NCBI GenBank assembly: GCA_020536535.1
Contig: JAHLWZ010000211.1
Coordinates: 1 to 36,197 of the forward strand
DNA length: 36,197 bases
Direction of reading: 5' to 3'
From: Pelomyxa schiedti
Lineage: Eukaryota; Protista; Evosea
In this document: positions 1-36,197 of the stretch, one piece after another
Layout of the letters: every line of letters begins with the position of its first letter
How positions within the stretch are numbered: position 1 is the first letter of the stretch
The notes under the pieces: model-generated
Seen by the model: the letters and a program-made list of their open reading frames with translations, nothing else
Databases searched by the model: none
Told to the model about the DNA's origin: nothing
Position numbers and translations under genes: made by a program

Positions 1-1286
1 ATACTCATAACAGCATGAAGGCTGACTCAAGTCATCTGATGGTGATGAGACGCTATACACTTCACGCACCAGTGTTTCACCATGTTTACACAAGCCAACG
101 ATGTGTGAAGGCCAGATTGTGTCAAGACTTCTGTACACCTCAGAGAATGACCGACTGTGACCAGTCTCGGTGTTGAAAACTCTGGAGCCACCACCCACCT
201 CATCATACAGAATGAGGATGGTTCGTGGTGAGGACCAAACCAAGTCACAAGGATTCTCTGCTGTGTTTGGCAGAAAGAAGCTCCTCTCAGACACCACCAC
301 AGTTACACGAGCTTCAATACTCTTCTCAAGGTCGACAAATGAAATTGAAGAGAACCACGGTGGATCCTCTTCCTCTTCTTCTTCTTCAGAACCACAGTAC
401 TTGCCAACAATAACAATCACATCACCACAAGGATCAAAAGGAGATAGCCTCACACAGCAACCACTGAGTGGCACGGTGCACCTCACGCCGACGCTGTTGG
501 AAACGGGAACACCATTCGAGTTCATCCTCCACACATTCAGCTTCCTCGCTGAGGCATGCACTTCCACCCTCACAAGCCACTTTTTGTTGCTGACCCACCA
601 CCCGCGCATGTCATACCGGCCAGGCTCGCCCTCCAGCGCCGCCACCAGCTTCCCCTCGCCGTTCACAATGCATGCGCCGGTCGAGTTGTTTTCCACGAAA
701 TTGTCACTGCCGCCGCCGCCCAGGCACTCCTCGATCGACCCCTGGGAACTGCGATCGTCGAACAGGTGGAACTTCCACATGCCCAGGCACCGGCACGACA
801 CGACGCCGAGGGTCNNNNNNNNNNNNNNNNNNNNNNNNNNNNNNNNNNNNNNNNNNNNNNNNNNNNNNNNNNNNNNNNNNNNNNNNNNNNNNNNNNNNNN
901 NNNNNNNNNNNNNNCACGAAATTGTCACTGCCGCCGCCGCCCAGGCACTCCTCGATCGACCCCTGGGAACTGCGATCGTCGAACAGGTGGAACTTCCACA
1001 TGCCCAGGCACCGGCACGACACGACGCCGAGGGTCACACTCAGGCCCAGGAACACGTGGACTGAGGTGGTTGTTGAGTTCCGCTCGGGGATCTTGACCGA
1101 GGCTCCGATCCACCTGGAGCAACCGACGACCCAGTCGCGGCCGAACTGCTCGCACAGCGCCCGATTGTGGGACAGCAGCCTCGCTGGGCTCCCTCTCCCG
1201 CACCTCTCCAGCCATGAGCACGCAAAACCACCAACAAACTGCGATCGCGCCTCGATCACTGCCCGAATCGTCCCCGTTAGTTTCAT
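1..1286 (-). CDS. Orphan 'ARxQ' family protein, copy 1 (3'-truncated by the window, spans a scaffold gap)
   Basis: ATG at 1286 gives MKLTGTIRAVIEARSQFVGGFACSWLERCGRGSPARLL...FGRDWVV...LGLSVTLGVV. After removing the gap and its duplicated flank (221 nt), the frame continues without a stop (…DNFVENNSTG…SNKKWLVRV…LNVWRM…VDLEKSI…) to base 1. It shares motifs with the other copies. Confidence 0.8.
694..1035. other. 100-N scaffold gap (815-914) with identical 121-nt duplicated flanks
   Basis: 694-814 is identical to 915-1035. Collapsing the duplicate restores the reading frame of the surrounding gene. Confidence 0.9.
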
Positions 1287-1476
1287 TTCGATTTTTGGTT
1301 GAATGTTACGCCGCTGTTTTCATCAAACCTGGGGACATTGTGGTTCACCTAAAATGATGGTGTCGTTTCCTGACTGAAAATGAGAGGGTGTTAGTGTCAT
1401 TAATTGATAATAATGTCGAAGGGTGTGGTTTTTTATTATTACTTTGTTTTGTTTGTCTCATACAGGAGGTTGTGCA

Positions 1477-2966
1477 ATGCAAGCCAATAAAGGAGTCGAA
1501 ATTGTGGGGCAACCATTTGGAAAGTCACCCCTCTTTGCCTCGAGCCAGTTCATTTCATTCGCTTCGGCAGCCTACCGGTACCACCATCACTTTCCTTTAC
1601 ACAACTGTCACCAAACTTTTCTAGTGCAGCACAACAGGATGAAACGAAGCAACAAATTGCTGAAAGTGATGACTCCAGCTGTAACATGGTTGTTGAGGGT
1701 GGGGCTGGTGTAACCTCCTCTACTTGTTGCTATGCTGGGATGTTGCCTCTTTGGATTGTTGTGGAGTGCATTGGGAAGAAGTGGGTGATGGCTGTTGAGA
1801 GGGTAGTGGCTGTTCAACCTGATGGGCCAAACCTTCCACTTGACACCGAGGGCATCATGTTCAGCATCTCATACACTCTGGGCATTGTACAAAGGCCTGT
1901 CTTTGTCGAGCTGTATTTTACAGTTATTGGCTGGATTTCTCCTGACAGAACTGTGGAGCGTTACATTGGAGACGATGGAACCATTATTTTTGTTGAGGAC
2001 CAGCACACTGGTGAGGTGGTAATGGGGCCTGTTGAACTTGAGGCAGAGGCACAGGAGTCACAGCTTTACGCTTGCAACACGAAATGGATTGTGTTGACAC
2101 AGAGTCCTGACTTGCTTATGGTGTGGAAAGTTGTTGATGGAAAGGTTGTGTCTGACTGTGTAACCTGCTCCTGGCTGGATTATGAATTTATAGACTACTT
2201 GGGCTTCATGCCAATCAGTGAGTATAACTTTGAGTCTGACATCCTTGAAGTGTTTTACTGGAAGTGTGGAGGAGGCGCAGATATTTATTATGGGGAGGAA
2301 GTTGGGGGTCTTATTGACTTGAACACGGTCTGGAACAAACATGCAATCAGAACCACAAAGGTTTTCAGATGCAATTTGGAGCATGCTTGGATACAAAGGA
2401 ACGAGCTGAAGGTGAATCCAAGACCACTTGTTGACCGCGCTGAAAGGAAGTACTACGTGCTCTGTAGGTCAGAAGGCATACTGGATTTGAGCACAGGGAG
2501 AGTCATGAGGAATTCTTATGGCACCGAACTGAAAGTAGTTGATGAATCACACATTGCTGCAATAAGCAGGGACCTCTCATCTACAGCAGTGGTTTCCCTT
2601 TCATCATTCCTCGCTGCCTATGCCATCACCCCCTCTGATGAGTTCTGCTATTCATCACCAAAAAGGAGCTTGGTTGAACCGTGCATTACACACCAACACA
2701 CACCAGGGACTGTGTTTGTGACTGCTGGATGGGGGCTGGTGCTATCTGTAATCCACTCAGAGAGTTCTCCAGATACTCGCTTGGTCACAGTCAAAGATGC
2801 TTTGTCAGGAACGGCTTTGTTTACAATGTCCATTCCAAGGAGCGAAAGGAGTGAGCGACTTCTGACACTCTTCCCAGTCCGATTCAGATCACCAAGACTG
2901 TATGGGTTCAGCACAGATAGAAAGATGAAAGATAATATGAAAGCATTTTCGTGTGTGATTCAGTAG
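1477..2966 (+). CDS. Orphan 'ARxQ' family protein, copy 2; join(1477..1577,1625..2966)
   Basis: MQANKG...LFASSQFISFASAAYR is in one frame and the 426-aa body (CCYAGMLPLWIVVECIGKKWVM...FSISYTLGIV...CNTKWIV...MVWKV...VKDALSGTALF) in another. A 47-nt GT...cttttctAG intron (1578-1624) joins them in frame. Its closest relative in the window is 34689-36197. Confidence 0.75.
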
Positions 2967-3069
2967 AATACAAGAATCATCCCTTCTCAAATAAATAACC
3001 GCCCTGTTGCCTTTTGTTGTTACAAAAATGATACATTTAAATGTTCTTACCAAGCCACTCTTCACTTGG

Positions 3070-3178
3070 GCAACCGACCGCCCAGTCACGGCCGAACTGC
3101 TCGCACAGCGCGCGATTGTGGGACAGCAGCCTCGCTGGGCTCCCTCTCGTCGATCACCGGGCGGATCGCGTTTCCCAT
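3070..3178 (-). pseudogene. 5' fragment of an 'ARxQ' family gene (copy-1-like) with an internal deletion
   Basis: 3070-3148 is near-identical to 1119-1197 (RGSPARLLSHNRALCEQFGRDW). It is preceded by MGNAIRPVID (compare TIRAVIE), but the ARSQF...RCG segment is deleted, the frame is broken, and similarity ends after ~80 nt. Confidence 0.7.
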
Positions 3179-3316
3179 CGTTTGTGATCTTTTTGATCAA
3201 CCCAGGTGGCCACGTTGTCTGATCCACCAACCCACGAGTCCCTCACTCAAACACCTCTGAAGAAAACGCTCATGGGTTGAGAAAATAAGCAACATCATCA
3301 AAACAAAAGGGTTGGC

Positions 3317-4424: not shown

Positions 4425-4524
4425 NNNNNNNNNNNNNNNNNNNNNNNNNNNNNNNNNNNNNNNNNNNNNNNNNNNNNNNNNNNNNNNNNNNNNNNNNNNN
4501 NNNNNNNNNNNNNNNNNNNNNNNN
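4425..4524. other. 100-N scaffold gap
   Basis: Run of N between the duplicated GH116 segment and a microsatellite. Confidence 0.95.
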
Positions 4525-4616
4525 TGTTTTGTTTTGTTTTGTTTTGTTTTGTTTTGTTTTGTTTTGTTTTGTTTTGTTTTGTTTTGTTTTGTTTTGTTTT
4601 GTTTTGTTTTGTTTTG

Positions 4617-4645
<29 letters not shown>
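4525..4645 (+). repeat. (TTTTG)n microsatellite, about 24 units, truncated by the gap
   Basis: Perfect pentamer repeat seen directly. Confidence 0.95.
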
Positions 4646-4647
<2 letters not shown>

Positions 4648-5139: not shown

Positions 5140-8100
5140 TTATTCAATAAGGAGAATGTGATGAATAAGGAACTGGTTGTGGTCAATGTGATGGAAGACG
5201 CGAACGTAACCATCAAGTATCCGTTGGTCACACTGAACGTGATCTGTGTGTTTTTGGTCAGTTTGAATGTGAGGGGATGAAGGAATGGAATCAAAAACAA
5301 GGCTACTAGTACACACCGCAACGAGGGAACCGGCGAGTTTGACTGTGACTTGGGTAGCACCGCAGTTTCCGAGCCCGATTGACTTTAGCGGGATGGAGCC
5401 GTACTTGAGTATGACCTGGGCCGTGCCGGCGGTTGTCCCCTTGACCAGGAAGTTGCCCCAGCCACCGCCGTCGCCGGTGCTGCTGCTGTTCCCGCTCCCG
5501 CAGCAGAAGAAGCACTGGAACGAGGGAGATGACACCCGCGGCAAGAACTTGAGGATCTGGGCCGGGGAGCTGTACTGGAACCCGGTGAGCGCATCAACCA
5601 GGGACCACGATGATTGGGGCCGCGCGTACTGTATTCAGGTCATTCCGGGATGTAGGGAATGTTAGATGAAGTAAATATTATTGTGGGGAATGTGAAGAAG
5701 ACGGAATGGTTACGTGATCACCGCATTCGACTTCTGTAGGTGGAATTAGGAAGAACTCTTTTTTTTTGTGATTGTTAATGGTGTGTTGGTGGAAGATACC
5801 GTTCCATGGGCTCCTTCTGGATCCATCTTGTCGGGCACGAATATCATCACATATTGTGTTGCCGGTGTCACTGAGACCTTGGTAAAAAGCAAGTGCGGCT
5901 ACTGGGTACTCCACACCACTCCAGCACTCATAGCTACCAAAGGTTTTAGAGGAGTGGTTGAGGAAAGGTCATCTATTACCTGTAAAGAATGGGAACTGGT
6001 GGCGCCCCCAAGGAGTACCTGAGTAATAGTGAGGATATGGTAAGTGTAGAATTTCTGAAAGACTCCTACGTTCCAATCCACAAGCCATTATCGCGAGAGT
6101 CCATGAAGACACGAGGGGTTTGGGATGCTGGATCAAATCCCACTTGCCTGTTTTGATCAAATATACTTTGTGTTGCAGCCTATTTTGAATGAGCTGGCAA
6201 AAGTGGTGGGAGGAAGGAGATGTAATATACTTTTACATGCGCTTCTGGGAGGATGTATCCCAAGTCGAGGATAAATGCCCACCACTGGCCCAAAAGCTGA
6301 TCTGAAGAGAATCACTGGGTTTAAATTGTGAAAATAAATCCCAAACCGATAAAGCAGCCTGGAGAATACATGAGATGATGGTTTTTATGGAGGATAACTT
6401 TACCATTTCCAATTGCGCAGTTATTAGCATCGTAACCAACATTGACAAACCACCCGGCATCATTCCAACATAGTTTATCATAGTTAACAGTGCCCAGCAG
6501 ATACCTGTCCCGGTACTTAGCTGCCCTGGAGGTATCCTCAACCAAGAGTGCTATTGAAATAAGAGAACTCGAAAAATCTTCTTCATGTACCCATTTCTTC
6601 CATAGCCCTCAGAGCACACAGGTAAAGGCTACCAATGAATGTATTGGCACCATAAATACTGCAATCGTATGTATTAAATTGCTCGCCACGTATTACTCCG
6701 TCGCCTTGCACGTCATAGTCCGTCATGATGTGTGACATAAGCAGGCAAAGCTGTTAAGAGGAAAGGTTACATTAACGCACATTATTTTGGCGGGTCATTA
6801 TCCCAAATACCTGGGGCCTTAGTAAAAAGTGGTAAATAATGAATTTCAAGAAACAAAGTGAAAGCACACCATTTCTGGAGGAACCATGAAGAACTCCCCC
6901 CCTGCAACAATTCTCGGTAAGTCTTCAAGATGGTACCAAGCTCTCCATCCACTAAGATAGATTTAGCTTTCGTTCCATACAAACTGTTTACTTGCAACAA
7001 CACCGCCTTGAAAACTTGACCAAAGTTGCCACTCTTGCTTCATTTCAGTTGACGGAAGAACGGTTCTCTACCATTAATTAATTTAATTTGGGAAGAAATT
7101 TTGAACCTCAGGAATGACGCCATATGGACTGATTTTATCAAAGAGTTCAGTTTCTCGCATCCCCTGTGACGGATAATGAGTGTTTTCTCCAAGTATTAGT
7201 GAGGGTGAAGCGTACTTGTTCAAGAGTTGGGAAGAGCCGTGACAGTGTCATTTCATAATTCCACACCTGAGGAATTTATTAGGAATATCTTGCGCTCATC
7301 AACGGCATACATGCGTGCAGTCCATCGGGCAACAACCGCCAGTTCTTTGCATTGTACCACCTTATCTTAAGTTTCAGAAAATACAAAATTGGGAACATAC
7401 GAATCACAGCCTCCGGCACTGCAACCACAACATCCTTCAAATGCATGAAGTCTGCCAGAATCAGTAATGAAACGTGGAAAAAGTTAAGGAAGTTTAAAAT
7501 TGATGTAAGAGCTAAACAGAATGATTGGATATAAGTTGGACTTCGAAGTACTGAGATTCGACCTCCAGCGGATTCAAGGCTGACCAAGTATGAGGAAAAT
7601 CGTAGGAGGAAAGTGAATACGTACATTTGCCAGTTCAAGGTGCTAGAATAAAAACTGTCCACAAATGCTTGTGTAATTGCATCCAGTGTCGAGAAATTCG
7701 TTGTGATGTAGTTGACAACTTCCACAATTGAAGGCCAGAACCTTCAAGACGGATATTTATGTTATATTATACTTTCGAAAGTGGGAGGGGGAAGGAAACG
7801 TTGTGTATTGGTTCCCGAGCCAGAGCTTCGATTTCGAATCGGCAATCTGCAGAGGGTGAACGTGAAATTTTCACTGCAGTTTTGCTTCACAAACGTTATA
7901 CGGCTGGGAATAGTTCACCCAATGATTTGGGAAATGCCAGACAAGGGCAAAGTTGACTGTGTGCGTTGACTGGGCGGCAACTGTGAAAGAAACCTGGAAG
8001 TAGGATCAGAGGGTTAATTCGGCCAACTACAAACCAAGAACATACTATTGCAGCAGCATTCCACGTTGTGCCCGAAGGGGAAGGATCGGTTTGCCCCGGC

Positions 8101-18462: not shown

Positions 18463-19570
18463 TCAGGAAAATTTGATTGGATAGGGGGTGACATTGGGCG
18501 CGGGTTGTGGTGCATTGAATGAGTGTTCCTCTTTGCACTGCAGGACCCCTGTACCCTGCAGCAACGATGCATCTTCCAGTGTTCTTCCTTGAATAGTGTT
18601 GCACGGAGTGTCGAAGTCGGAGCTGCAAAACACATATCGAAGGCTGTCCTCCTTGGAAAAGACAACCAGATGTGAAGGGGGGTATGTAAACTCCACTGTG
18701 TATTGTGAGGGAAGCTTCTTCTCCTTCTTGGTGACAGTGTTGTACACTGAACAAGGCTCTTCACTGGTGGGAAGTTGGGGATAATTGACCATGAGCATTT
18801 CATCAGGGGAAACCCATAGCAGATCAAGAGCACCTGGAAGATTGCAGATAATTGCACTTCTTGCTGTCATAATTGAGTGACAAGCAAAGGTCTGAGGCAA
18901 GTCAAAAAACATCACATTGTAGAAGTTCTCGAGCCCATAAGTGAGAGCCAACACATTCCCATCACCGGGTAGAAACACGGCTTGGCAAATCCTGCCCCAA
19001 AGAAACTGGAGGTCCACAGTAACTCCGGGAAACTTCTCATCTTTTCTATCTTCCACAAATCAAAGCTTCTTGTACACAACAGATCAGCCACTTAGAATTT
19101 GACTGGGGTTTCAGTCTGAGGGAACTGTCATGATAGAGTCTCTTGTACAACTGGCCGTGACTGTCCATGAGCCAAGTGTCCTGAGAGGAGAGCAACACCA
19201 CAAACCTGCCACTCTCCCCGATTTTAGAGATTGTACGAAGGTCGTACGTCCTCCAGGCGCGGCAACTCACCACACCCATTGTGGGAGACAGGCCCAGGTA
19301 GACACAGAGATCCAAAAAGCCAGTCACCTTCCGGAACCGAACATTGTTGATGAGCTTCGCGGCGTGCCTGGTGACCCTAACAACCCAGTTCATACCCAGT
19401 CCCACAATGACCGACGGCGGCAGCGCCCTCAAAGCACTTCGGTACCCACACCTCTCGACGAACACACCACACGCAACGGCGACGAACTGCGCCCTCGCGT
19501 CGATGGCGGGGCCAACACTCATACAAACGTCGCACTCGGCCACTACTTCGCTGTCTTGTGGGCCAATCAT
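18463..19570 (-). pseudogene. Orphan 'ARxQ' family copy 3, frameshifted near 19040-19060
   Basis: IDARAQFVAVACGVFVERCGYRSALRALPPSVIVGLGMNWVV...LGLSPTMGVV...SNSKWLI then a stop at 19046. The family 'WKIE' motif is in a second frame and the remainder (DEKFPGVTVDL...FDLPQTF...) in a third. Confidence 0.65.
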
Positions 19571-19768: not shown

Positions 19769-22700
19769 TTATGTATTGTGGGTGCGTGACCAATAAGCGG
19801 TGTACTGTTGTGATATTTGTGGTAGGTTTGCGGGAATTGAAGGGATTGGTTCCGGTTTCGTCATTCCGGTATGTGCTGTTTTGTGGTTAGGCAAGGCGCG
19901 GCCGGTTTATTTAATAAAGGGGGAGAGCGTACGAACCCAGAGTTTTCAAAAGGGAGTCCAGTCTAAGCTTGGAATCGAATGCGGTGTCAATTACTTGTAG
20001 ACTGAGCTCGAACAGGTCCGTTTTGGTTGGGATGTGGTTGGACTCAAGCCGGTTACTGAGAAACTGGATTGGAATGAGTCCGGTTGTGTGGAATTTGTCA
20101 GAGAGAAGATAACGAACCTCCATATATTCAGTCGAATATTCACAGATGGAGGCCAGTACAGTGGCATTGCGGGAGGTGGAATACAAAAGAGAGTTGAATC
20201 TTTGTAAATCCTTTTGGGCTGTAGCCATGTTGAGAAATGCGGAAAGGGAAAAAATGTTCAGACCTTTAATTTCATGTGTTTTTTGTATCTTGCAAGATAA
20301 ATCAATTTCCTTTATGCTTTCTTCCAACGAGCTGAATTTAGCAGATAAATGCCGATACTCACTTGCAATTGTAGACTGGTGCTCCTTTACATTATATGCA
20401 GACACTTCTCTTTTGTACCTGAAGAGCTGGAATTTGTTATTACAATGGAAACGATTTTTGGCCGCACCTTCTGAATTTTGTCCACTAGATCTGGTTCCAA
20501 TCGTGTCTTTCTTCCTGGAAATGCTTTGGGGACCCAAGGTTGGGTGTGAGGAGGTTCGGTGCCTTTTGACGGTTCAACTGCGACTGGTGTAGTGTAAGGG
20601 AGAAGTGGAGATGGCCCTTCTAGGGTTGGTGTTGGTGTTGGTGTAATTGGGGGAGTAATATCTTGGGATAGCTGGCTGGTTGTGCCAGGCGGCTTGGCTG
20701 CGGGTGGAATTACTATTTGAGGTGAAGGCATTGCAACTGGGGTAATTTTATTTGTCTCAATTTTGATGGGAGTAGTAGGAATTGGAGTTCGGTTTTCGAT
20801 ACTTGGGGATGCTGTTGGTGCAGTGGTTACTGGAGGGGTTGCTGTTCGGGGTAGTCCAGGAGACTTGGAGTTAAGGGCGGGAGGTTGCTGGAACCGAGCT
20901 TTAATTGCTTCAAAAGATTCATTAGTTTGGTTGGTGAGCCCACTAGAGCGAGCAGTAGTTGGAGTGGAAAGAATACTTGGTGTAGGTGAAGACAGAGGAT
21001 TTTTAGATGGGGTCACGGGTGCTGTCACAGTTGTTGAATTTTCTGAGGGGGTTGGAGGTGGCAAAGGAGGGAGGGATAATTTTTGTTTTTCCTCAATTTG
21101 CGTCGTACTTATGCTCTTTGGAGTGAATAACGGGAAACTGCTTTGCGTACCTGAAAACACAGGGATTGTGTCTGGGGTAGAGGATTTGGAAGTGGACTGC
21201 TGGTCTTTTTTCTGTTTTGTGGCAAAGGGGTTTGTTGCCTCGGGAAGGCTTTCCAGGGAATCCACACTGGGCAATTTAAAATCGAAGGATCCTGAAGAGC
21301 CTGAAGAAAAGGAAAGTGGAACTGCGGGCAGAGGTAACGTGTCTGGTACTTTTGGAGCTGGTAAAGGGGGACCTTGCGGTTGAAATATTGAAGAGACCGG
21401 CGGTAGTTCGAATTTTGGTGAAGTGGCTGGTGGTTTTTCAGAGTGAACAGAGTCATGCTTCTTACTTGAGGTTGAAAAAGGGTCTGTTGTAATGGCAGGA
21501 AGACTGTCCAGTGCATCCTTTGTGGGAGCCGGAAAAGTGAAAGGGGTTGCTGTCACTTGAGGTTCAGTTGGAGTGAAACTGGAGTGTCCTGTAACAGGGG
21601 GAGATGCTGAGTTCAGCTTTTGGTTGGCTAATTTAGCTTGTGCTTTCAGTGGGAGACGGTGTTGCGTTTGGGGTGGTCTTGAGGATTCTTCATCAGCGGT
21701 GGTGGAAGGAGGTGCTTTTGTTTTCTTGGAATCAAAAATGGAGGACGGACTGTCAGACGAAGGGAGGGACGAAAGGGGATCGCTGTTAGCTGTGTCACTG
21801 AAGGAGAAAGATGGTATTGAGCTGAAGAGTGTTGGAGAGGGTGCTGTTGGTGAAGAAGTTGCAGGCGTCAGGCTTCTTGTGGAATCACTTGAAGCTGATA
21901 CTCCAATAACGTGTTGTGTGAGTTGCGTTGGGTTTGACTGGATAGGGACTAGAAATAGGCTTGGGCGCTCTTCAATTGGTTTTGGTGTGGTGAACAGGGG
22001 TGGTGAGGTTCCTTGTTGTTTGGCATCCGGGATTTTTTTCTCAAATATTTCCAATACAGGTGTTGCTGGTTTGTTCTGCGAGAAAAGTGATCCACTCCCA
22101 TTGAAAATCCCCAATGCCGGCCCCCCACTTACAACACCAGGGAATGCTGGACTGGTGCTGGAAGAAGTGGTTGTGGAATTGGAGGGTACTGGAGTAGGTG
22201 TAAATTGGAAGCTTGGTGGGGTGATGGGTGGCTGAGGTACCTTGAACACAGGAGATGGAGTGTCTTTTTTGGTTTGTGGGGAGTCAGATTTTGTACTCGT
22301 ACTGGGAATGGGTGCGAAAAGGATCGGCGCAGGCTCTTGTGGCTTGGCTACCTCGGTTTTCTTTTCGAACAGTGACAAAACAGGGGCTGTACCACTGGAG
22401 GGCTTGGCCGGAGATGACCCGGTTGTGTCCGCACCAAACACAGAACGAGAGCCGGATGAAGATGTAGTGATGGAACTGGTGGAAGAAGAAGAAGCGGAAG
22501 ACGGCGGAGCAAAGCCAAGTGCAGCCGGCGGGGCATTCTGGAACATTCCAGCGAAAGGGTTCACGGCCGTTTTAGCGGCGGCTGCCGGCTGCCCAGTAGA
22601 GAAGAAGTTGGTGGCCGCGCCAAAATCACCCGCTCCACTGCTACTGCTGCCCGACGTCCGGCTTGCATCCCCACTTCCGCCAAACACACTCCTACCACCA

Positions 22701-23497
22701 AAAACACTCCCTGAATTCCCGCCGCCGCCGCCGCCACCACTTCCAGATGATGATGGTGATGATGATGACGATACTGCCGGTGCAGAACCAAAAGTGCTCT
22801 TTCCAGAACCAGAAGCAGGACTCCCCAAACCACCAAAAATACTTCCCGAGCCGCTGCCGCCGCCGCCGCTTCCCGGCCCCGCCGTCGCCGTCGCGCTCCC
22901 TCCCACCACCCCCACCGACGGCGACGCCTTCCTCTCGAACAGGTTCCCCACCACATCGCCCAGCTTTGGCGGGGCGAACAGGACCATCGGCGCAGCCTGC
23001 TTCCCCTGCTGCTGCTGCTGCTTCTGCGGCGTGGTCGTAGTCGTCCTGCTGCTACTTCCGCTGCCGCTGCTCTTCCCCTTCCCGGCGAACATGCTCCCCT
23101 CTACCCCGCCTCCTCCCCACCCCCCCACGCCGCCGCCCTCCTCCTCTGCATCTGCATCTGCGTCTCCCCCTCCCCCTCCCCCGCCTCCTCCTCCTCGGTC
23201 TCGGTGTTCGTTGTACTCCCTCAGTGCCCGCAGATCCTCTTCCTCGTCCTCGTCCTCCTCTTCCTCCTCTTGGTCGTCGTCGTCTCTGCGTTCGCCGCCG
23301 CTGCCGTCGTCTTCGCCGTCGTCGCCTGGGTCGCCTTGCCCGCGGTCGTCGTAGTCGCTGCCACTTCCGTTCGGGTCGTCCTGGCCCTCGTAGTCACCTC
23401 CGTCGTCGTAATCGTCGTCGTTCTCCTCGCTGCCGCTGCCGTTTGGGTCGTCGGGCTTTGGTGGGCACCCTGCCGGTGGTCCCTGGTGCCGCCACAT
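19769..23497 (-). CDS. Large low-complexity protein (acidic N-terminus, FG-like motifs, P/S/T-rich region, helical C-terminal domain); possible FG nucleoporin
   Basis: 1010-codon first exon from ATG 23497 with SIFGG, STFGS, SVFGG (x2), DFGA, SVFGA and NPFA. A phase-0 41-nt GT-AG intron (20427-20467) joins it to the 19911-20537 frame, which is coiled-coil-like (EYRHLSAKFSSLEESIKEID). A probable last exon follows a ctaac...acag acceptor near 19880. The 3' end is approximate. Confidence 0.6.
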
Positions 23498-25832: not shown

Positions 25833-25898
25833 GGTGTGGTGGATGTGAGGAAGACTGGTATCTAACAGTCAAAAAAACAAGAAAAAAAACAACGGGTG

Positions 25899-27499
25899 AT
25901 GGGGAATGGAGGTAGCAGCAACAGCACAACTATAGTGGGAGCAGGAGGAGGAGATACACACCTTGTCGTGGGGGAAGGTGTCACCCCGTGCCGTGCGACC
26001 AAAATGAACCTGGCCCGTGACCAGCTCCTCGCCCTCCTCGCCCTCGCCTGCTGCTGCTCCTCCTCCTCCTCCTCGCGAGGGGGAGCCCCCCGTCGCGGCT
26101 CTTCCTCCTCCTCCGCCACCAGCACCACCACGTCCTCCTCGTCGTCGAGCGGCCTCTGCGTGCTCCCCGTGGCTGTGCTGCGCCACATCGGCGCCACGTG
26201 GGTGCTGCCCACCCGCCGCGTCGTCGCCGTCGCGCGCGGCGCCCCTGCGCCCTTCAGCAGCAGCAGCCGCCGTCGTAAGCCGCGCGCGGCCCTGCCTTTC
26301 GGGGAATGCGACTGGGCGGCGATCACGTTCGGGGNNNNNNNNNNNNNNNNNNNNNNNNNNNNNNNNNNNNNNNNNNNNNNNNNNNNNNNNNNNNNNNNNN
26401 NNNNNNNNNNNNNNNNNNNNNNNNNNNNNNNNNNCGCCGCGTCGTCGCCGTCGCGCGCGGCGCCCCTGCGCCCTTCAGCAGCAGCAGCCGCCGTCGTAAG
26501 CCGCGCGCGGCCCTGCCTTTCGGGGAATGCGACTGGGCGGCGATCACGTTCGGGGTCTCTGCGACCCTCGGGATCACGTCGTCGGCTCTGCCTGTCCAGA
26601 TCCCGGCGACGCTCCCGATTCGCGGGTGGATCGACGACTCGACCCTGGTGGAGATGATACACATCGGAAGGGGTGTATTCACGTGCGACAGGCTCAACTC
26701 CATTGGAACGAGGAAGGAGCACCTGCCTGTTGGGCTCGCTGACGACCCTGACACTACCCCGGTGTCCCACTGTGCAGTCTCTGGCAAGTGGGTGTGTGTG
26801 ACCCACTTCCACTGCTGGGCCATGAGCGTGTGGAAGGTGGCTGGGGGAAGGCCGGCTTCTCTTGGTGAGTGCAGGACCTTCAGGTTCCCTGGGGACTTGA
26901 TGGAGGTGACTGCGCCACAGGTGGTTATGTTCACACACTGTCTCCCGCCCAGTGCTTCTGTTGGTTATGGTGACGAGCTGTCGGTCCTGCTTGCTGATTA
27001 TGTGAGTTATCACGTCATGCAGATCGATGTGAAAGAGAGCTTCATGACTGGCGAAATGAAGATCGCCTCCAGAATGTCTGTTCCACTTCCCCATCAAATA
27101 GCCTCTTTCGAGCCAACAGGAATCATGTGCGATCATCACAACCAGATTCAGTTCATTGTTGCAGAGGACGGTTTGATCAACCTCACAACTGGAAAATGCA
27201 TTGTGATCCCGGGTGCCATCAACACGTGTATTGTTGACGACCACCACGTGGCTGCTGAGACCTGGGATGGAGCCTGGAAGAGGCTCACTGTGTACGACGT
27301 AAGAATGCTCAACAACGCAACAGAGCTGAGTTCTGATGGTGTTGTAATGTCTCACACCAAAGTGGGTTGTGGAGCACATGGAGGGTTCCACATTGTCAAG
27401 GACAGTACCATTGTTGACACACTCACAGGGTGTGTTGTCATGAAAATGAGTGGGGGTGCATTCAAACAAGGCTGCTCTCTCAATGTTTACAATCTTTAG
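25899..27499 (+). CDS. Orphan 'ARxQ' family protein, copy 4 (~459 aa after collapsing the gap duplication)
   Basis: MGNGG...MNLARDQLLALLALACC...VLPVAVLRHIGATWVL...FGVSATLGIT...VSGKWVC...SVWKV...IDVKESF...IVDTLTGCVV. Removing the gap plus duplicated flank (221 nt) gives one intact 1380-nt ORF. Confidence 0.8.
26214..26555. other. 100-N scaffold gap (26335-26434) with identical 121-nt duplicated flanks
   Basis: 26214-26334 is identical to 26435-26555. Confidence 0.9.
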
Positions 27500-27867
27500 A
27501 AAGAGACATTTGTTAGCTTCTGTGGGCTCGAGAAGAAGTCCCACAGAGGAAGAAAACGAGTGAGAGTGAAGAGAATAAATCGGGTTCTCTTGTTTGTTCT
27601 TAAAGGGTGTGTAAAATCTCGCAGAGCGGTTGTGCGATTAGACTTTCCCTAATTTATAATTAATCAGTTTCGCAGCACTTGTTGGCGATTTTTTGGTACA
27701 ACTTGTGGCGAGGTGGATGGATTTCTTCTAATCCTATTCCCTGTTTCCCCTGCGCCACACAACTCGATTTTTGCCACCCACAACTTGGTTTTTTTACAAG
27801 TTGCGCCAACTGACAACTAACTGACAACAACAGACAACAGCACGGCCAATGTCAACGCCAACAGAAC

Positions 27868-28443: not shown

Positions 28444-28511
28444 GGGCGTGGGCGTGGGCGTGGGCGTGGGCGTGGGCGTGGGCGTGGGCCTGGGCGTGGG
28501 CCTGGGCGTGG
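28444..28511 (+). repeat. (GGCGTG)n hexamer repeat, about 11 units
   Basis: Seen directly, with two GGCCTG variants. Confidence 0.9.
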
Positions 28512-29154
28512 TGGTTGTACACAAAAAAAAAATTTCTTTTTTTCATCCACATGTTTGTATTGCTGCCACCCACTTTTATTGCCGGTTGTGGTTTGTTGGG
28601 CGTTGGCTGGTTGTTGCGGGTTCTGCCAGTTGGCAGCCGCCACAGATGAAAAATCGAGTTGTACCAAAAAATCGCCAAAAAGTGCTGGGAACGTGGCAGG
28701 CGGTTTTGATTACATGCACACTTGTCCGAGAATCCATTTGAACATCGCGGCCTTTTAACCCGATAGACTTTCCCGAATTTATAATTAATCAAGTGTGCAT
28801 GTAATCAAAACCGCCTGCCACGTTGTTGTTGCTGTATTTGTGCACCCAGCTGTGCTGATCATTACCTTCGCTGTCTCATTCTGGTAATAGTCCAGATTCG
28901 GCTCAGTCCTCAGTCTCTCCAATCCCACTCAAGTGCGCCAGACTTCAGAGCCTCGCGAGCAAGGCCGAGTTCGTGTACTTTGTGGAACACACAGTTGTTT
29001 TCGAAAAAGAAAAGAGAATGTGAGACCTGAGGCCGAGAGTGAGGATTAGTGCATAAGGACATTAGTGGGTCCCAGCAGTTCACACGGAGACGATGGGGAT
29101 GTTTTCCACTTCCCAGAACAGCTTTTTATCCCCGATACGGCGGATTGAAGAGCG

Positions 29155-30597
29155 ATGCAACAACAGATCCACGGACACGGACACCCGTCAGCAATTGTGT
29201 CGCTGAAGGCACGTGACCAATTCGCATCGTTGTTGATGCTGACACACCCTCGCTGTGGCCTTGGCGGTTGTGGTCGACAACAACAACAACAGCAACAGCA
29301 GCAGGTTGGGGTGGCCATCAGGGTCGTGTGGGAGTACTGCATCGAAGTAACCAGGGTGTTCTGTGTGCCTGTCGAGTGCGTGGCTCAGTTCAGGGTGTCT
29401 GATGCTTTGGGTTCTGTCGTTGGTGTTGGTGTTGGTGGTGCTGGTGGCCGTGGTGACGACGAAGTGTTGTTGCACTGGGTGTGCGGGCCTCGTTCTGTCT
29501 TCAAAAAGGTTCTCAATGCAAACCACTGCAACGTCGTTGAGACTACATTCTATGAGGATGACTTCACGGCATCGTTTTACCTCAGGAACATCTTAGTTGA
29601 TTGTGAGGTGGGCAATGAGAGATGCTGTCTGGCGAGGGACGTTGTGATGTCGAGTAGAACCTCACTGAACCCAAAGTGGTTTGTTCTCCTGGTAGATAGA
29701 AGCAGGAATCTACTGATTGCTCCAACAACAACAACCTCGTTGATGGAACGAAATTCACCAGAGAGCTTCCGATGTGTTGTTGCAGTGCCAATAGTCACCA
29801 ACAATGGCTCTGACATGAACTTCTTTCTCAACCACACACGCCATGACGAGGGTGTCTTACTGTCTGTCAAGAAAACTCGTGGTGCTGGTGCTGTTGGTGG
29901 CGGAGGAGGTGAACAAGTGTCCACTGTGGCGCTGACAAGGGTTGACATCCAGCAAACGTGGTCATCGAAAGCGTTGACAGTGCTCAGTTGCACAAGGTTC
30001 CAGCTGGCCAATGATGTCCACTGCATAGGCGACGCGTTGGTGATGCAGAAAAGAAATGGGTCTCGTGCTTTCATCCTCACTGTAGGTTACGAGGAGATGT
30101 GGAGGCAGCGACATGTCATCCATGTTGGTGAGGAGGATGGAGGAGGCACATCAACAATGATTGTGGGCACAGGTGGTGCTTCTGCCGTGTTTGTTTTGCC
30201 TCATCGTCACAGAAGTGATGATTGGGTAGTTTCCCTCTCACAACTGAGTGCTTCCCTATTCTGCGTTGGCATTCTTTCACTTGGAACCACTTGGAACTCA
30301 GGATACCATTATTGTCCACAATCATTGGAAATCTGGGACATCAACCAGACTGTGGCCACTCCAACAGGAGGAGGAAGCATAAGCAAGCCACTGAGGGAGA
30401 TTGAGCTGAGCAACTCAGTTCGTGGCATTTTTGCAGAGGGAGGCCTGCTTCTCACCTGCAGTTGTGACTGTGGACACAGTGATATTTCAGTGACTGACTC
30501 TTCAACAGGGGCACTCATCCTCACTCTCTCTGGTGAAGCTGCGCAGCCACTCACCGATTTTACTCACACCTTCTCCTTCCTGAATTACCATTTCTGA
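29155..30597 (+). CDS. Orphan 'ARxQ' family protein, copy 5 (480 aa, intronless, divergent subtype)
   Basis: LKARDQFASLLMLTHPRCG...IRVVWEYCI...FRVSDALGSV...LNPKWFV...VDIQQTW...LEIWDIN...IFAEGGLL...VTDSSTGALILTL. Single long ORF. Confidence 0.8.
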   Translation: MQQQIHGHGHPSAIVSLKARDQFASLLMLTHPRCGLGGCGRQQQQQQQQQVGVAIRVVWEYCIEVTRVFCVPVECVAQFRVSDALGSVVGVGVGGAGGRGDDEVLLHWVCGPRSVFKKVLNANHCNVVETTFYEDDFTASFYLRNILVDCEVGNERCCLARDVVMSSRTSLNPKWFVLLVDRSRNLLIAPTTTTSLMERNSPESFRCVVAVPIVTNNGSDMNFFLNHTRHDEGVLLSVKKTRGAGAVGGGGGEQVSTVALTRVDIQQTWSSKALTVLSCTRFQLANDVHCIGDALVMQKRNGSRAFILTVGYEEMWRQRHVIHVGEEDGGGTSTMIVGTGGASAVFVLPHRHRSDDWVVSLSQLSASLFCVGILSLGTTWNSGYHYCPQSLEIWDINQTVATPTGGGSISKPLREIELSNSVRGIFAEGGLLLTCSCDCGHSDISVTDSSTGALILTLSGEAAQPLTDFTHTFSFLNYHF

Positions 30598-31113
30598 AAT
30601 CTTACAATCCACTCTAGAGGCAAATCAGCCACTTAATCACAGTGTCGCCCTCAGCTGCTCCTACATGAATTCAGTTGAACATCGCAGCCTTTTAAAAGGG
30701 TGTTCAACCCTTTTTATGCCTTGACAACAACGACGAGAACTCTTTATTCTCTCACTCTCATTCCCAATTCCAATGGGAACTTCAGTGAAGCAATTACAGT
30801 AGTGAGTGCATCGACCGAGGGCAGTTCTGAGTAGCAGTACGCTACACGACGCTCGTAATAGCGACTTAGCTTTTCCTTCACAAGATCCAAATAACTCAAA
30901 CGAGTTGAGTAGTTTATTTAAAACTCAATTACTCAACCAATTTAACGACCATTGTGATCTCGTTGAAACGGAGATCTTATAAATGCTACGCAGGGGAATG
31001 GTGCCAAAGGTGTCAAGCTTGGCTGTGGTGAATCTCTTGCCATTCTAATCCCGCGATCTAAAGTCCCTTGAGATACCGAGAACAGCAGTTACACCAACAA
31101 ACGAAAACTGGTG

Positions 31114-32462
31114 ATGGGGAATGGCGGTAGCAGCGAGACCGCAATGATGGGAGGAGGAGATACACACCTTGTGGGGGAAGGCGTCACCTTGTGCCGTGTG
31201 TCCAAAATGAACCTGGCCCGTGACCAGCTCCTCGCCCTCGCCCTCGCCTGCTGCTCCTCCTCCTCCTCCTCGCGAGGGGGAGCCTTCCGCGGCTCTTCCT
31301 CCTCCTCCTCCTCCTCCTCCGCCACCACGTCCTCCCGTCGGCCGTCGGCCTTCTTCCCGTGGCTGTGCTTCGCCACATCGGCACCACGTGGGTGCTGCCC
31401 ACCCGCCGCATCGTCGCCGTCACGCGCGGCGCACCTGCGCCCTTCAGCCGCCGCAGGCCGCCTTTCCGAGAAAGCGACTGGGCGGCGATCACTTTCGGGG
31501 TCTCGGCGACCCTCGGGATCACGTTCGGGGTCTCTGCGACCCTCGGGATCACGGCGCTGCCTGTCCAAATCCCGGCGCCGCTTCCGATTTGTGGGTGGAT
31601 TGACGACTCGACCCTGGTGGAAATGAGACACCTTGGAAGGAGTGTATTCACACGTGACAGGCTCAAATCAATTGGAACGAGGAAGGAGCACCTGCCTGTT
31701 GGTGTAGGTCTTGTTGACGACCCTGACACTCTCCAGTTGTCTAGATGTGGAGTTTCGGGCAAGTGGGTGTGCGTGGCACACTCTTATTGCAGGGCCATGA
31801 GTGTGTGGGGGGTACTTGGAGGAAAGCCGGCTTCGCTTGGTGAGTGCAGGACCTTCAGGTTCCCTGGGGACTTGATGGAGGTGACCGAGCCGCTGGTGGT
31901 GATGTTCACACACTGTCTCCCGCCCAGTGCTTCTGTTGGTTATGGTGACGAGCTGTCGGTCCTGCTTGCTGATTTTGTGAGTTATCACATCATGCAGATC
32001 GATGTGAAGGCGAGCTTCATGACTGGTGAGATGAGGGTTGTCTCCAAAGTGTCTATTCGTAGAGGAGCCTATTTCGAACCAACAGGAATCATGTGTGATC
32101 ATCACAACCACAACCAGTTCATTGTTGTAGAGGACGGGTTGATCAATCTGGCAACTGGAAATCGCATTGTGATTCCAGGTGCCATCAACACCCGGATTGT
32201 TGACGACCACCACGTGGCTGCTGAGACCTGGGATGGAGCTCAGAAGAGCTTCACTGTGTATGACGTAAGCATGCTCAACAACACGACAGAGCTGAGTGCT
32301 GCTGTTGTAATGTCTCACGGAACAGTGGGTCGTAGAGCGCATGGAGGGTTCCACATTGTCAAGGACAGTACCATTGTTGACACACTCACAGGGTGTGTTG
32401 TCCTGAAAATGAGTGGAGGTGCATTCAAACAAGGCTGCTCTCTCAATGTTTACCATCTTTAA
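31114..32462 (+). pseudogene. Orphan 'ARxQ' family copy 6, recent paralog of copy 4 with a frameshift near 31330-31350
   Basis: High nucleotide similarity to 25899-27499 from start to stop. The ARDQLL N-terminus (frame of 31111) and the LPVAVLRHIG body (frame of 31359) are out of frame. It also has a 30-nt tandem duplication (ITFGVSATLG x2). Confidence 0.7.
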
Positions 32463-32579
32463 AGAGAGCGTTTCCCACTACTAATTCAAAACTGCGTAGC
32501 ATACATTCTATTGCCCTTTTTCTCAAACACACCATTTCCAAGCTGAAGGAAGAAAGTGCTGTTGTGTTTCAGCGATTGT

Positions 32580-33690: not shown

Positions 33691-33710
33691 AACACGGGTC
33701 AGTCACTGCA

Positions 33711-34645
33711 ATGGCACAGTGTTCGCAGGTACAACTGGTGCTGAGAATAAGACCTCCCTCTTCAGGAGTTCAGGACTCAACAGCTTTTACTTCAGCACCT
33801 CCTATCTTAGATCCCCAGGTACAAGGAATTACCACTGCAATCTCGTCAACATCAACCTCAGTTTCTTCTGCCAAAAACAAACAAAAAATTTCTCTTCAAA
33901 GTGGCAGCAGCAAACTTCCACTACAACTGTCGGTCACAGTAACGGCTATTTCTAGTAGTAGTAGTACATCATCCCCATCTCCTGCAACTACAAGTGGAGG
34001 ACCCCCACAGCGTGCTGCTCCCTCAGGCCTCCTCAGCGCTCTGCCCCATCAGGACCTCCCCAGCACACAGCCCCAACTGCCTCCCCTCAACCAACTCAGC
34101 CAGCACAACCAACCCCAGCAGTAGTGGTGCAGCCACCCCCTCCCCAGCCCACACCACAGCCAACTCCCCTGCCGGCGGTGCAGCCCACTCCGCAGCCGGC
34201 GCCGGAACCTGTGGCACACCCTGCGAGCCCCCTGTCTTCTGATGTGCCACCTCCAGTGACACCTTCTCCTGCTGCTGAACCTCCATCCAGCTTCATGCCC
34301 CCACCCCCAACCAGCACCAAATGGGTTTCCCAGAGAAAGGATGGACCACCAGACCTTACCGTACCCCACCTGGGACTTCAACACTCCAATCACCACCTTT
34401 GGCAGCACCATGCTCCACATCGCGTGCGAGTACGGGCACGTGCCGCTCGCGAGGCAGCTCCTCGCCGTGGGCGCGACGCGAGCGGTGTGGATGTGGACAA
34501 GGGGTACCCGCTGGCCTGGGCGTGTGAGGGGAAGCACATGGGCGTGGTGGCGGCGCTGCTCGGTGCCCACGCGTGGACGTCAACGCGGCGGATACGTCGG
34601 GGTCTCTTGTTGGCAAGTTGCATGTCGGTGACGACAGTAAATAGC
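33711..34645 (+). pseudogene. Degraded gene with S/T/P/Q-rich N-terminus and ankyrin repeats
   Basis: The ATG 33711 ORF stops at 34124 and the Pro-rich sequence continues in another frame. Ankyrin-like segments STMLHIACEYGHVPLARQLLAVGA and GYPLAWACEGKHMGVVAALL lie in different frames, followed by VDVNAAD in a third. Confidence 0.65.
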
Positions 34646-34688
34646 AAGGGAAAAGAAAAACCCTCTCATTCCTTATTTTTTTCTATGA

Positions 34689-36197
34689 TCATAGGGGATT
34701 GTGGAATGGAACAGGATGGATGTCAACTGGAAGCAGGGCGACCTGCACATCTGTCTGCTTCACTTGGAACAGCACAGTGCCTGTTGTTGCATCAATGAAC
34801 TCATGTGACATTAGGACCTGTGGGATGTAGAACCTCTCTGAGATTGGTGTGACCCTCATTTTGGAGAGCCTTGGTCTCTTTGGCTCTGAGGAGTGGTGCC
34901 ATGATGACATTGACAGGGAACTTGATGTTAGAATGCCGCAACCAACAGCAGCAACCACTGATCCTGGTGAAAAGTGGTGAATGTGGATTGGAGTCACTTT
35001 GTCAAAACAGGACACTTCAGAGGAGGGTGATGGTGGCAACGAAGTGGCTGATGAAATCAGCTCTGACAGAGAATAAACTGATGTTTTCACTGTGCTATGA
35101 CCACCCTTTGTGAGACTCAGGTGCGTTTCGTCAACTGCCTCCACAATCAGTCTCCTGGCAGATGGGGAGCCTTCAATCAATGTGATAACTTGGCCTGTGT
35201 TCAGCACCAACACCTTGACTTCACAATCTCTGTTTCCAAGCAGGAAGTGATACATCCCACTAGATCTGTCAACCAGTGGTTGCGTGAGCGACTCTGCCTT
35301 GATGGCCTTCTCTGAGACATTGCACTCTCCAATCACTTTGAGTGGCACTGTCAAACAATGTTCGACATTGGCCACAAATGTGGTCAGGTTGATGTGAACA
35401 ACACACAAGAATTCATTGGTGCTCCTTTCCTCAGTGAAGATAACTTCCAGAACATCAGACTCAAAGTCAAACTCACTGGAGCCAAAGAAGCAGAGTGACA
35501 GAATGGAATCAAACCATGGGTACTTCATCAAATTCCAACAGGGATCCAGTTGAGTGTTCTCCACCTTGCACACGAACAACCCAGATTCATTGGTGCTCTG
35601 TCTGACTCCAGCAATGACAACCCACCTCTGGTTGCAGCACCCCTTCGTGCCCTTCAACTTTATTTTGGATTCACCAGGAATCGCAGAATCTTCCTTCACC
35701 TCCCACACACTGAATTTCTTCAACCACTCCTTCTGGGTGATGACGGTGTTTCCCCCAATCCACCCAACACAGAACTCCTCCAGTGAAACCACAACAGGCT
35801 TGTGGACCAGCCCAAGTGTTGGCCCCACACTGAAGAACACGAAGTAGTCCTCAGATTCATTATAATCAGCAGTTGGATTTGCCCCAAATTCCACAAGGAC
35901 CCTCCTCTCAGGCCACATCACCCACCTCTTCCCGATCAGTTCCACCAACACCCACAATGGCAAAATGCCAACGCAACAACCGGTCGGTGGCGTTGCTGCA
36001 GGTGACACCACAGGTTCAGATTCGGAGGAGGATTGTTGGGATGGGGATGGGGAAGGCGACGGGACGTCATTATGGGGTGGTGGTGGAGGAGCGCTGGATG
36101 ACGAGGATGATGAATGAGCGAAAATGAGTTGAACGATCTGGGACCGAGCCCGCGTCCCACAATTGATCGCCACCGCACTGTCGTCAAAGTCACGGTG
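34689..36197 (-). CDS. Orphan 'ARxQ' family protein, copy 7 (frame open to the window end; start lies outside)
   Basis: RARSQIVQLIFA...CCVGILPLWVLVELIGKRWVM...FSVGPTLGLV...CNQRWVV...FDFESDVLEV...PLVDRSSGMY...FIDATTGTVLF. Clearly homologous to copy 2 (YNFESDILEV, PLVDRAERKY). Confidence 0.82.
   Translation of the reverse strand, partial: HRDFDDSAVAINCGTRARSQIVQLIFAHSSSSSSSAPPPPPHNDVPSPSPSPSQQSSSESEPVVSPAATPPTGCCVGILPLWVLVELIGKRWVMWPERRVLVEFGANPTADYNESEDYFVFFSVGPTLGLVHKPVVVSLEEFCVGWIGGNTVITQKEWLKKFSVWEVKEDSAIPGESKIKLKGTKGCCNQRWVVIAGVRQSTNESGLFVCKVENTQLDPCWNLMKYPWFDSILSLCFFGSSEFDFESDVLEVIFTEERSTNEFLCVVHINLTTFVANVEHCLTVPLKVIGECNVSEKAIKAESLTQPLVDRSSGMYHFLLGNRDCEVKVLVLNTGQVITLIEGSPSARRLIVEAVDETHLSLTKGGHSTVKTSVYSLSELISSATSLPPSPSSEVSCFDKVTPIHIHHFSPGSVVAAVGCGILTSSSLSMSSWHHSSEPKRPRLSKMRVTPISERFYIPQVLMSHEFIDATTGTVLFQVKQTDVQVALLPVDIHPVPFHNPL

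Follow-up and report, generated by a model that had tools for sequence, protein, structure and literature searches.

Family copies in the window

The window, that is, the whole stretch of 36,197 nucleotides of DNA of the anaerobic amoeba Pelomyxa schiedti analysed here, contains seven long copies of one protein family, referred to below as c1 to c7 in the order of their positions. All seven are real, and their start and end coordinates agree with those given in the initial annotation. The features of the window that are discussed here are as follows.

1-1286, minus strand: c1, subfamily C, with the N-terminal box (N-box) at 1050-1265, from frame and profile
694-1035: scaffolding artefact, in which 694-814 and 915-1035 flank 100 N, are identical at 121 of 121 positions and give the same peptide on both sides
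1477-2966, plus strand: c2, subfamily A, with the stop at 2966, the body located by profile and the N-box in a second frame
18463-19570, minus strand: c3, subfamily C, a pseudogene, with the N-box at 19298-19513 in a three-frame reading
25899-27499, plus strand: c4, a subfamily-C copy whose linker is rich in serine; complete, with 459 aa, after the false gap at 26335-26434 is collapsed
26214-26555: scaffolding artefact, in which 26214-26334 and 26435-26555 flank 100 N and are identical at 121 of 121 positions
29155-30597, plus strand: c5, subfamily B ("HPRCG" box), a complete single open frame of 480 aa, with the N-box at 29194-29409
31114-32462, plus strand: c6, a recent duplicate of c4 with 82% amino-acid identity
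33698-33760, minus strand: fragment, the probable last-blade remnant of a subfamily-B copy, a weak match
34689-36197, minus strand: c7, subfamily A, an open frame running to the contig end

The family profile, which comprises 124 domains, matched all seven copies in the window, in agreement with the earlier view that they form a single family. The E-values were 2e-55 for the body of c2, 5e-36 for c4, 2e-69 for c5, 5e-41 for c6 and 3e-74 for c7. The C half and the N half of c1 were matched at 4e-18 and 1e-13, respectively, and the N half of c3 was matched at 7e-17, but its C half only at 0.36. The ordered motif skeleton that had been described for the copies can be traced in the conservation of the alignment columns of these 124 domains.

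The gaps within c1 and c4 are scaffolding artefacts. When the gap and one of the duplicates (221 nt together) were cut out, the frames of both copies became unbroken, that of c4 running from ATG to stop, and this removal was used to check the frames and to compute identities. The gap at 4425-4524, which lies outside the family, is flanked by no such duplicate. The frame of c1 begins with an ATG at 1286 (MKLTGT...) and contains the false gap at 815-914, and its C-terminus is cut off by the contig start. As judged against a 92%-identical paralogue (L018), c7 is without only about its first four codons.

The claim that the family includes frameshifted and truncated members holds in part: c3 and c6 are frameshifted, whereas c1 and c7 are merely cut by the contig ends. 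In c3, the N half is intact, two frameshifts occur near 19050, and the LWKI motif lies there in a third frame. In c6, a 7-nt deletion relative to c4 near 31345, in the serine-rich linker, places the N-box out of frame, and a 30-nt tandem duplication is present at 31488-31547; three DNA libraries made from the source sample gave an identical assembly of 31255-31546. A fragment had also been claimed in addition to the long copies. The candidate at 33698-33760 has 62% identity over 21 aa to residues 428-448 of c5 (E = 0.01) and matches the subfamily-B profile at E = 0.0012, a weak match that makes such a remnant probable.

The description of the copies as almost all intronless agrees with the single open frames of the members, with c2 containing a candidate intron. 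The N-box helix exon of c2 at 1477-1577 (MQANKG...SSQFISFASAAY) is in a frame that differs from that of the body, and a candidate GT..AG intron of 47 nt at 1578-1624, which opens with GT at 1578 and has a pyrimidine tract before the AG at 1624, would put the N-box and the body in one frame. The Skp1 gene likewise has an intron of 47 nt.

The GenBank model Pelo_2671, which joins c5 to c6, is a false fusion of neighbouring genes. Two RNA-library contigs (30243-30498 and 30612-30885) match the region of c5, the one copy with evidence of expression, with 0 differences, although they come from one single-cell library and may include DNA, and the contigs at the 3' part of c5 continue across the splice site of the GenBank annotation. 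Because a model on this contig demonstrably fuses neighbouring genes, the domain fusions found in long database models (TBC/TLDc, RING/NOSIP, macro and MBOAT) were not accepted as evidence. For annotation, these observations mean that GenBank models can merge adjacent copies of the family, and that exact 121-nt overlaps may hide behind the 100-N gaps of the assembly.

Extent and evolution of the family

The copies belong to a very large P. schiedti family of proteins of about 450-500 aa. Amino-acid identity between the window copies is 13-30%, except for the 82% of c4 and c6 by direct comparison, and no match of c5 to c2 or c7 was detectable by BLASTP. Profile comparison connects three subfamilies, A, B and C, into one superfamily, with links of 99.5% between A and C (E = 2.5e-23), 98.1% between B and C (E = 1.2e-13) and 53.7% between A and B (E = 1.3e-4), the last being collinear across 370 columns. 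Six-frame searches of the genome gave at least 104 matches for c2 and at least 70 for c5. In a search of 1.84 billion proteins, the family profile matched 677 representatives at E ≤ 0.001 and 393 at E ≤ 1e-10; against the 19,876 predicted P. schiedti proteins reported in the genome paper, 677 corresponds to a share of about 3.4%.

All ten sampled profile matches were P. schiedti hypothetical proteins, and every match with a readable source, in the profile and word searches alike, was from P. schiedti; the profile matches inspected were the best 150 of the 677, and relatives in other organisms may exist beyond them. A word-based protein search with c2 and with alignment A1, which is an insensitive method, returned proteins named as P. 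schiedti and one unnamed WD40-kinase match of marginal strength (E = 3e-4). No Pfam family was matched at E ≤ 1 by five whole family proteins, sequence searches of the PDB with the whole-protein profile and the box profile gave nothing meaningful, and the family is absent from the text of the genome paper. The proposal of an unnamed, lineage-specific family is supported by the lack of a Pfam match and by P. schiedti as the only source read among the 150 best of the 677 representatives.

The dN/dS ratio was 0.34-0.66 in eight close pairs of paralogues. In subfamily-B pairs, it was about 0.2 over the first 80 codons and 0.34-1.35 over the body. Since the overall dN/dS is below 1, the genes are constrained and under purifying selection, yet fast-evolving, with rapid divergence of the propeller; a ratio below 1 gives no sign of diversifying selection, which counts against a repertoire of variable receptors. 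The unit of the duplication that relates c4 and c6 consists of the coding region and at most 15 nt. New copies arise by local duplication of a unit barely longer than the coding region, and some of them decay; the presence of tandem and recently duplicated copies and of broken members is compatible with the birth-and-death evolution suggested in the initial annotation.

The copies might instead be open reading frames of a mobile element or of viral DNA that has integrated, an origin that would account for their number and their lack of introns. In favour of it, the genes lack introns while the genome has 7.43 of them per gene on average (PMC8887013), the copies number in the hundreds, and a dispersed repeat of 230-250 nt lies between c5 and c6. 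However, no transposase, reverse transcriptase, integrase or capsid domain was found with Pfam, and the c4/c6 duplication has no terminal or inverted repeats and involves the coding region only. Ordinary intron-rich host genes flank the copies, and a dN/dS below 1 also argues against this origin. No relatives were found in JGI metagenomes (query c7) or in viral contigs (query c5), in scans that see close relatives only. Taken with these results, a mobile or viral origin is very unlikely.

The N-terminal box and the predicted propeller body

The box has the consensus ARDQF.AL...RCG..SPAR.L.P...W..WV, in which helix 1 (A-R-D-Q-F-x-A-L) is followed by an R-C-(G) turn and by helix 2 (L-P...W/G..W-V). 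Three residues, Q, R and C, all of them polar, are invariant across 48 boxes. The box columns carry 1.86 bits, compared with 0.93-1.07 bits in the central propeller of the 124 domains, so that the box is the best conserved part of the protein. In some subfamilies, a low-complexity linker separates the two box helices and reaches up to about 100 aa in subfamily A. When the box was modelled alone, helices were predicted at residues 2-18 and 29-46 with a loop between them, in addition to a hairpin (pLDDT 76). This model gave no Foldseek match at E ≤ 0.001, and its best VIA-align match had a Z of 4.7, with no F-box protein among the matches listed. An ESM Atlas feature search with the box alone gave no usable match.

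A catalytic Q...C pair was considered and set aside, as no other invariant catalytic residues are present. A signal peptide or membrane anchor was likewise rejected: no hydrophobic N-terminus or membrane segment is consistent across the family, and the most hydrophobic points are dispersed over the strands instead of being N-terminal.

The initial annotation described the N-terminal motif as F-box-like, and the box could accordingly be read as a divergent F-box or BC-box, with the proteins acting as SCF or Elongin-cullin receptors that dock on Skp1 or Elongin C. The segment LP..L...IG..WV loosely resembles F-box helix 1, a conserved box with a variable propeller agrees with the overall logic of such receptors, and Skp1 genes are present in the genome. 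The F-box/WD40 and F-box/Kelch expansions of plants and nematodes likewise combine a conserved N-terminal box with a variable propeller, and they are likewise large and lineage-specific, with tandem duplication and many pseudogenes. The box of the present family, however, is not an F-box by sequence, profile or predicted fold. Even with the Pfam threshold relaxed to E ≤ 10, none of the 48 boxes matched a model of the F-box (PF00646 or PF12937), SOCS or BTB families. In hhalign, the box was aligned with 20 F-boxes of P. schiedti at a probability of 0.3% over 5 columns, whereas one half of these F-boxes against the other half, as the control, gave 99.2%. Canonical F-box-like matches are easily detected in the genome (at least 147), but none falls in the family copies examined. 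The distance from LP to W is about 12 residues here, compared with about 30 in the F-box, and the box of subfamily A is split by the variable linker described above. The predicted two-helix hairpin is unlike F-box structures, which have a three-helix fold. The F-box-like assignment is not borne out by these comparisons, and the reading of the proteins as F-box or BC-box receptors is extremely improbable. Complex prediction of the box with a Skp1 that is not native to the species (P0224, whose identity to the exons of P. schiedti is 70-94%) scored 0.02, with 0.34 as the mark, a result that speaks neither for nor against Skp1 binding.

The propeller-like body that had been suggested is supported by the AlphaFold2 model of c5 (pLDDT 74.6, pTM 0.78). 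The model contains 26 strands, close to the 28 or so expected for seven four-stranded blades, and superposes on solved seven-bladed propellers with Z of 15-17 over 257-328 aligned residues. Foldseek returned at least 500 propeller matches for this model, including a seven-bladed bacterial lectin, and the ESM Atlas shape search returned generic bacterial propellers with a TM of about 0.5. The best structural matches (Z 15.9-17.1, rmsd 4-8 Å over 270-330 residues) were Atg21 and WIPI2 of the PROPPIN/Atg18-WIPI group, Sec12 and the methylamine dehydrogenase heavy chain, although the sequence identity to these proteins is just 7-12%. Because the match list is flat and none of its entries stands out, the fold is all that the family and the known propellers have in common. 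No WD40 (PF00400) or Kelch sequence signature was found in the propeller with Pfam at E ≤ 1 in five proteins. The body is therefore predicted, on the basis of the model, to be a generic seven-bladed beta-propeller.

A possible repertoire of modular receptors

We tentatively propose that the proteins are cytosolic receptors of modular build that together form a repertoire. Every member would dock onto one common partner through the conserved helix-loop-helix box, and every propeller would bind its own target, for which symbionts, viruses, prey and self proteins are candidates. The nearest working analogy would be the substrate-receptor repertoire of cullin-RING ligases, with an architecture nearer to the DCAF/DDB2 type than to the F-box type. 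In DCAFs, the DDB1 anchor is an alpha-helical H-box that immediately precedes the propeller, and the H-box or the DDB2 helix-loop-helix anchors many receptors to one adaptor with moderate sequence conservation (PMC3928422). For the family, the same order of a short N-terminal helical motif and a seven-bladed propeller is predicted. It differs from the DCAF/DDB2 type in the lack of WD40 sequence repeats and of WDxR (DWD) motifs (1 of 124 family domains, with 3 expected from shuffling), in its strongly conserved box with the invariant R-C-G, and in having hundreds of members in one species.

The proteins could also form a propeller repertoire with no link to a ligase, serving as cytosolic lectin-like, pattern-recognition or scaffold proteins, in which the box would be a structural cap or an oligomerisation or membrane-anchoring element and the invariant cysteine a possible lipidation site. 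The generic propeller matches from Foldseek, with the bacterial lectin among them, are consistent with this reading, modification might take place at the invariant R-C-G, and no adaptor signature was found with Pfam, by the F-box profile comparison or in the WDxR count. On the other hand, a pure folding cap should conserve hydrophobic residues and not polar ones, and the long disordered linker after helix 1 in subfamily A is easier to reconcile with a docking helix on a tether than with a rigid cap. We regard a repertoire of this kind as possible but rather unlikely.

A more specific form of the docking-box receptor proposal is that the HPRCG-type helix-loop-helix box is a docking module of a new kind, whose partner would be the adaptor of a cullin-RING ligase such as a DDB1-like protein, and that the repertoire evolved by birth and death to recognise proteins of bacterial and archaeal endosymbionts, viruses or prey, which we consider unlikely. 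DDB1/CPSF160/SF3B3-like genes are present in the genome (C1224, C793 and C839), each split into many short exons, and an ESM Atlas feature search ranked DCAF17 first (0.88, 172 shared features), which serves as a lead only. Comparison of the box with solved H-boxes by sequence and fold gave no signal, and no sequence or fold link of the box to any known adaptor box was found.

The family is unnamed, lacks a Pfam model and has no relatives detected outside P. schiedti. Its layout, in which the box stays constant and the propeller varies, with copies in tandem arrays and copies in decay, is the hallmark of recognition repertoires such as the F-box, DCAF and BTB-Kelch receptors. If the box does dock on a cullin-RING ligase, the family would be the largest known E3 substrate-receptor repertoire of a single species, at about 3% of the predicted proteome. 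Methanogens and syntrophic bacteria are the partners of Pelomyxa in an obligate consortium (PMC10579272). In view of these resident prokaryotes, a large intracellular recognition repertoire would therefore be a testable lead on how a eukaryote manages them.

Family copies in the window

The seven copies in the window (c1 to c7) belong to a very large, fast-evolving and almost intron-free orphan family, in which each member carries a conserved polar helix-loop-helix motif at the N-terminus (the box) before a variable seven-bladed propeller (the body). Together, the copies make up 27% of the window, and their GC content is 50–60% in six of the seven and 46.7% in c2, with 47% in the rest of the window. 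The start and stop coordinates in the initial annotation were right for all seven, which are listed here with their subfamilies (A, B and C).

1-1286, minus strand: c1, subfamily C, running off the contig start
1477-2966: c2, subfamily A, with the box helix and the body in different frames
18463-19570, minus strand: c3, subfamily C, with two frame changes within about 60 nt near 19050
25899-27499: c4, subfamily C, a complete open frame of 459 aa after gap collapse
29155-30597: c5, subfamily B, a complete open frame of 480 aa
31114-32462: c6, subfamily C, a recent duplicate of c4
33698-33760, minus strand: probable remnant of a last blade
34689-36197, minus strand: c7, subfamily A, running off the contig end

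The gap at 815-914 in c1 is bordered by an exact 121-nt duplicate (694-814 = 915-1035), as is the gap at 26335-26434 in c4 (26214-26334 = 26435-26555), and an identical peptide is readable on either side of both. These two gaps are unmerged contig overlaps at which no sequence is missing. When each is collapsed by taking out the run of N and one of its flanking duplicates (221 nt in all), c1 has a stop-free frame of 355 aa up to the contig start. The gap at 4425-4524, which lies outside the family, has no such flanking duplicate. Other 100-N gaps in the assembly may be artefacts of the same kind. At the other end of the contig, c7 lacks only about four codons, judged by a paralogue with 92% identity.

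Frameshifted members had been claimed and were found in c3, which is a pseudogene, and in c6, where a 7-nt deletion relative to c4 in the serine-rich linker puts the box out of frame. The proteins of c4 and c6 are 82% identical with a dN/dS of 0.37, and c6 contains a 30-nt tandem duplication at 31488-31547, absent from c4, that repeats the conserved strand motif ITFGVSATLG. The c6 region is identical in the assemblies of three DNA libraries from the source sample, which are not independent of the assembly. In c2, a 47-nt stretch at 1578-1624 of the form GT...polypyrimidine-AG would join the frames of the box and the body exactly and is a plausible candidate intron; an intron of the same length is present in the Skp1 gene on contig C76 (positions 1583-1629 of the fetched piece L041).

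The GenBank model Pelo_2671 (847 aa; 29155-32459) joins residues 1-436 of c5 to the body of c6 through a predicted intron at 30463-31226, which drops the last blade of c5 and the box of c6. This model is a false fusion. Many other database models hold two to four family domains per entry and are probably similar false fusions; apparent fusions of the family with other domains are therefore untrustworthy. In a single-cell RNA library (n = 1, with DNA carry-over possible), contigs identical to 30243-30498 and 30612-30885 cover the 3' end of c5 and continue across the splice site that GenBank predicts, and none was found over c6.

Unity and extent of the family

BLASTP connects c2, c7, c4 and c6, but not c5, and the pairwise identity among the window copies is 13–30%, c4/c6 excepted. 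Forty paralogues fetched from the genome were sorted into the three subfamilies, where A has a long low-complexity linker within the box, B has an HPRCG box, and C bridges the two. In the comparison of profile against profile, A and C match at 99.5% (E 2.5e-23), B and C at 98.1% (E 1.2e-13), and A and B at 53.7% (E 1.3e-4), the last collinear across 370 columns. A profile of 124 domains matches all seven window copies significantly, and its conservation string reproduces the ordered motif skeleton described in the initial annotation.

In six-frame searches of the genome, c2 has at least 104 matches and c5 at least 70, many of them arranged in tandem within a contig; contigs C33 and C93 carry examples of recent tandem clusters. 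The assembly comprises 52.37 Mb in 5337 contigs; the published single-cell genome of P. schiedti is described as 52.4 Mb in 5337 scaffolds, with 19,876 predicted proteins and a mean intron count of 7.43 per gene, and the paper leaves the family unmentioned (PMC8887013). Among 1.84 billion representative proteins, the profile search gave 677 matches at E ≤ 0.001, 393 of them at E ≤ 1e-10, and all ten proteins sampled from the best 150 of the 677 are P. schiedti hypothetical proteins. A word search with c2 likewise found a hypothetical protein of P. schiedti as the only database relative. JGI metagenomes and viral contigs were also scanned, with sensitivity for close relatives only, and no relatives were found.

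The possibility that the family represents a transposon open reading frame was not borne out: no transposase-like domains were found with Pfam, the c4/c6 duplication is limited to 25884-27505 and 31099-32468 with no inverted repeats, and the copies are interspersed with ordinary host genes built of short exons. Between c5 and c6 (30838-31085) lies a dispersed repeat of about 230–250 nt that recurs at 28900-28987. It has at least 40 further genome copies at 79–98% identity and a read depth 15–80 times that of its flanks, and it resembles a MITE or SINE.

Two other loci on the minus strand were noticed. The 1036-aa open frame at 20387-23497 has no Pfam match. After an acidic N-terminus it is rich in Ser, Thr and Pro over a long stretch that contains numerous FG-type motifs (SVFGG, IFGGLG, NPFAGMF); its product looks like an FG-nucleoporin-like protein. 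The short exon at 6586-6741 (56-aa open frame) matches the GH116 catalytic domain (PF04685, E 1.7e-5), in agreement with the intron-rich glycosidase gene annotated initially.

The propeller body and the N-terminal box

The body had been described as propeller-like, and modelling agrees. The AlphaFold2 model of c5, built on a 40-sequence alignment (pLDDT 74.6, pTM 0.78), places 26 strands behind the N-terminal helical part. Exhaustive structural comparison of this model gave Z scores of 15–17 to seven-bladed propellers of unrelated families in a flat list (Atg21, Sec12, methylamine dehydrogenase, WIPI2, SEC31), and Foldseek and ESM Atlas concur in a generic propeller. The family maps to no known Pfam family and has no sequence relative in the PDB.

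Conservation along the protein is highest in the box, which is about 70 aa long and has 1.86 bits per column, compared with about 1.0 for the central propeller. The consensus of 48 aligned compact boxes is ARDQF.AL......RCG..SPAR.L.P.....LW..WV, in which Q, R and C are invariant; in subfamily A, helix 1 and the R-C motif are separated by the linker. Folded alone, the box is predicted to form a helix-loop-helix followed by a hairpin (pLDDT 76).

The likeness of this motif to an F-box, proposed initially, was not supported. A Pfam search of the 48 boxes returned no F-box, SOCS or BTB model even at E ≤ 10, and a search of PDB sequences with the box profile gave no match. Structural comparison of the box model found nothing above Z 4.7, and F-box proteins were absent from its matches. 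Alignment of the box profile with a profile of 20 F-boxes from the genome reached a probability of 0.3%; the control, in which one half of those F-boxes was aligned with the other, reached 99.2%. Canonical F-box-like matches number at least 147 in the genome, and no family copy examined contains one. Because of these matches and at least five Skp1-like loci (C76, C911, C832, C165 and C1244), the canonical SCF repertoire of the genome is itself large.

Constraint and possible role

The dN/dS ratio is 0.34–0.66 in eight close paralogue pairs, which is below neutrality and indicates protein-coding genes under constraint; the overall values give no sign of positive selection. Housekeeping genes are expected to be under strong purifying selection, and the family values would be high by that general yardstick. 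Within subfamily B, pairs have a dN/dS of about 0.2 over the first 80 codons, where the box lies, and some propeller windows are near or above 1.

The closest known architecture, by analogy, is the DCAF/DDB2 type, in which many receptors attach to DDB1 through an alpha-helical H-box that immediately precedes the propeller and is only moderately conserved in sequence (PMC3928422). The family box is predicted to stand before a seven-bladed propeller; unlike the DCAF/DDB2 type, the family has no WDxR motifs. The DDB1-like genes of the genome are split into many exons. A DDB1/CPSF160/SF3B3-family gene occurs twice as mirror images on contig C793 (141477-145286 and 171977-175786), every exon scoring identically, which could reflect either an inverted duplication of the segment or an artefact of the assembly.

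The main rival explanation, to which we give only slightly less weight than to our own reading, takes the propellers as a repertoire outside the ubiquitin-ligase system, in which the box would be a cap or an anchor. Our own reading is tentative and held at less than even confidence: the family may be a modular receptor repertoire, in which the box would dock every member onto one common partner and the propellers would supply the specificity.
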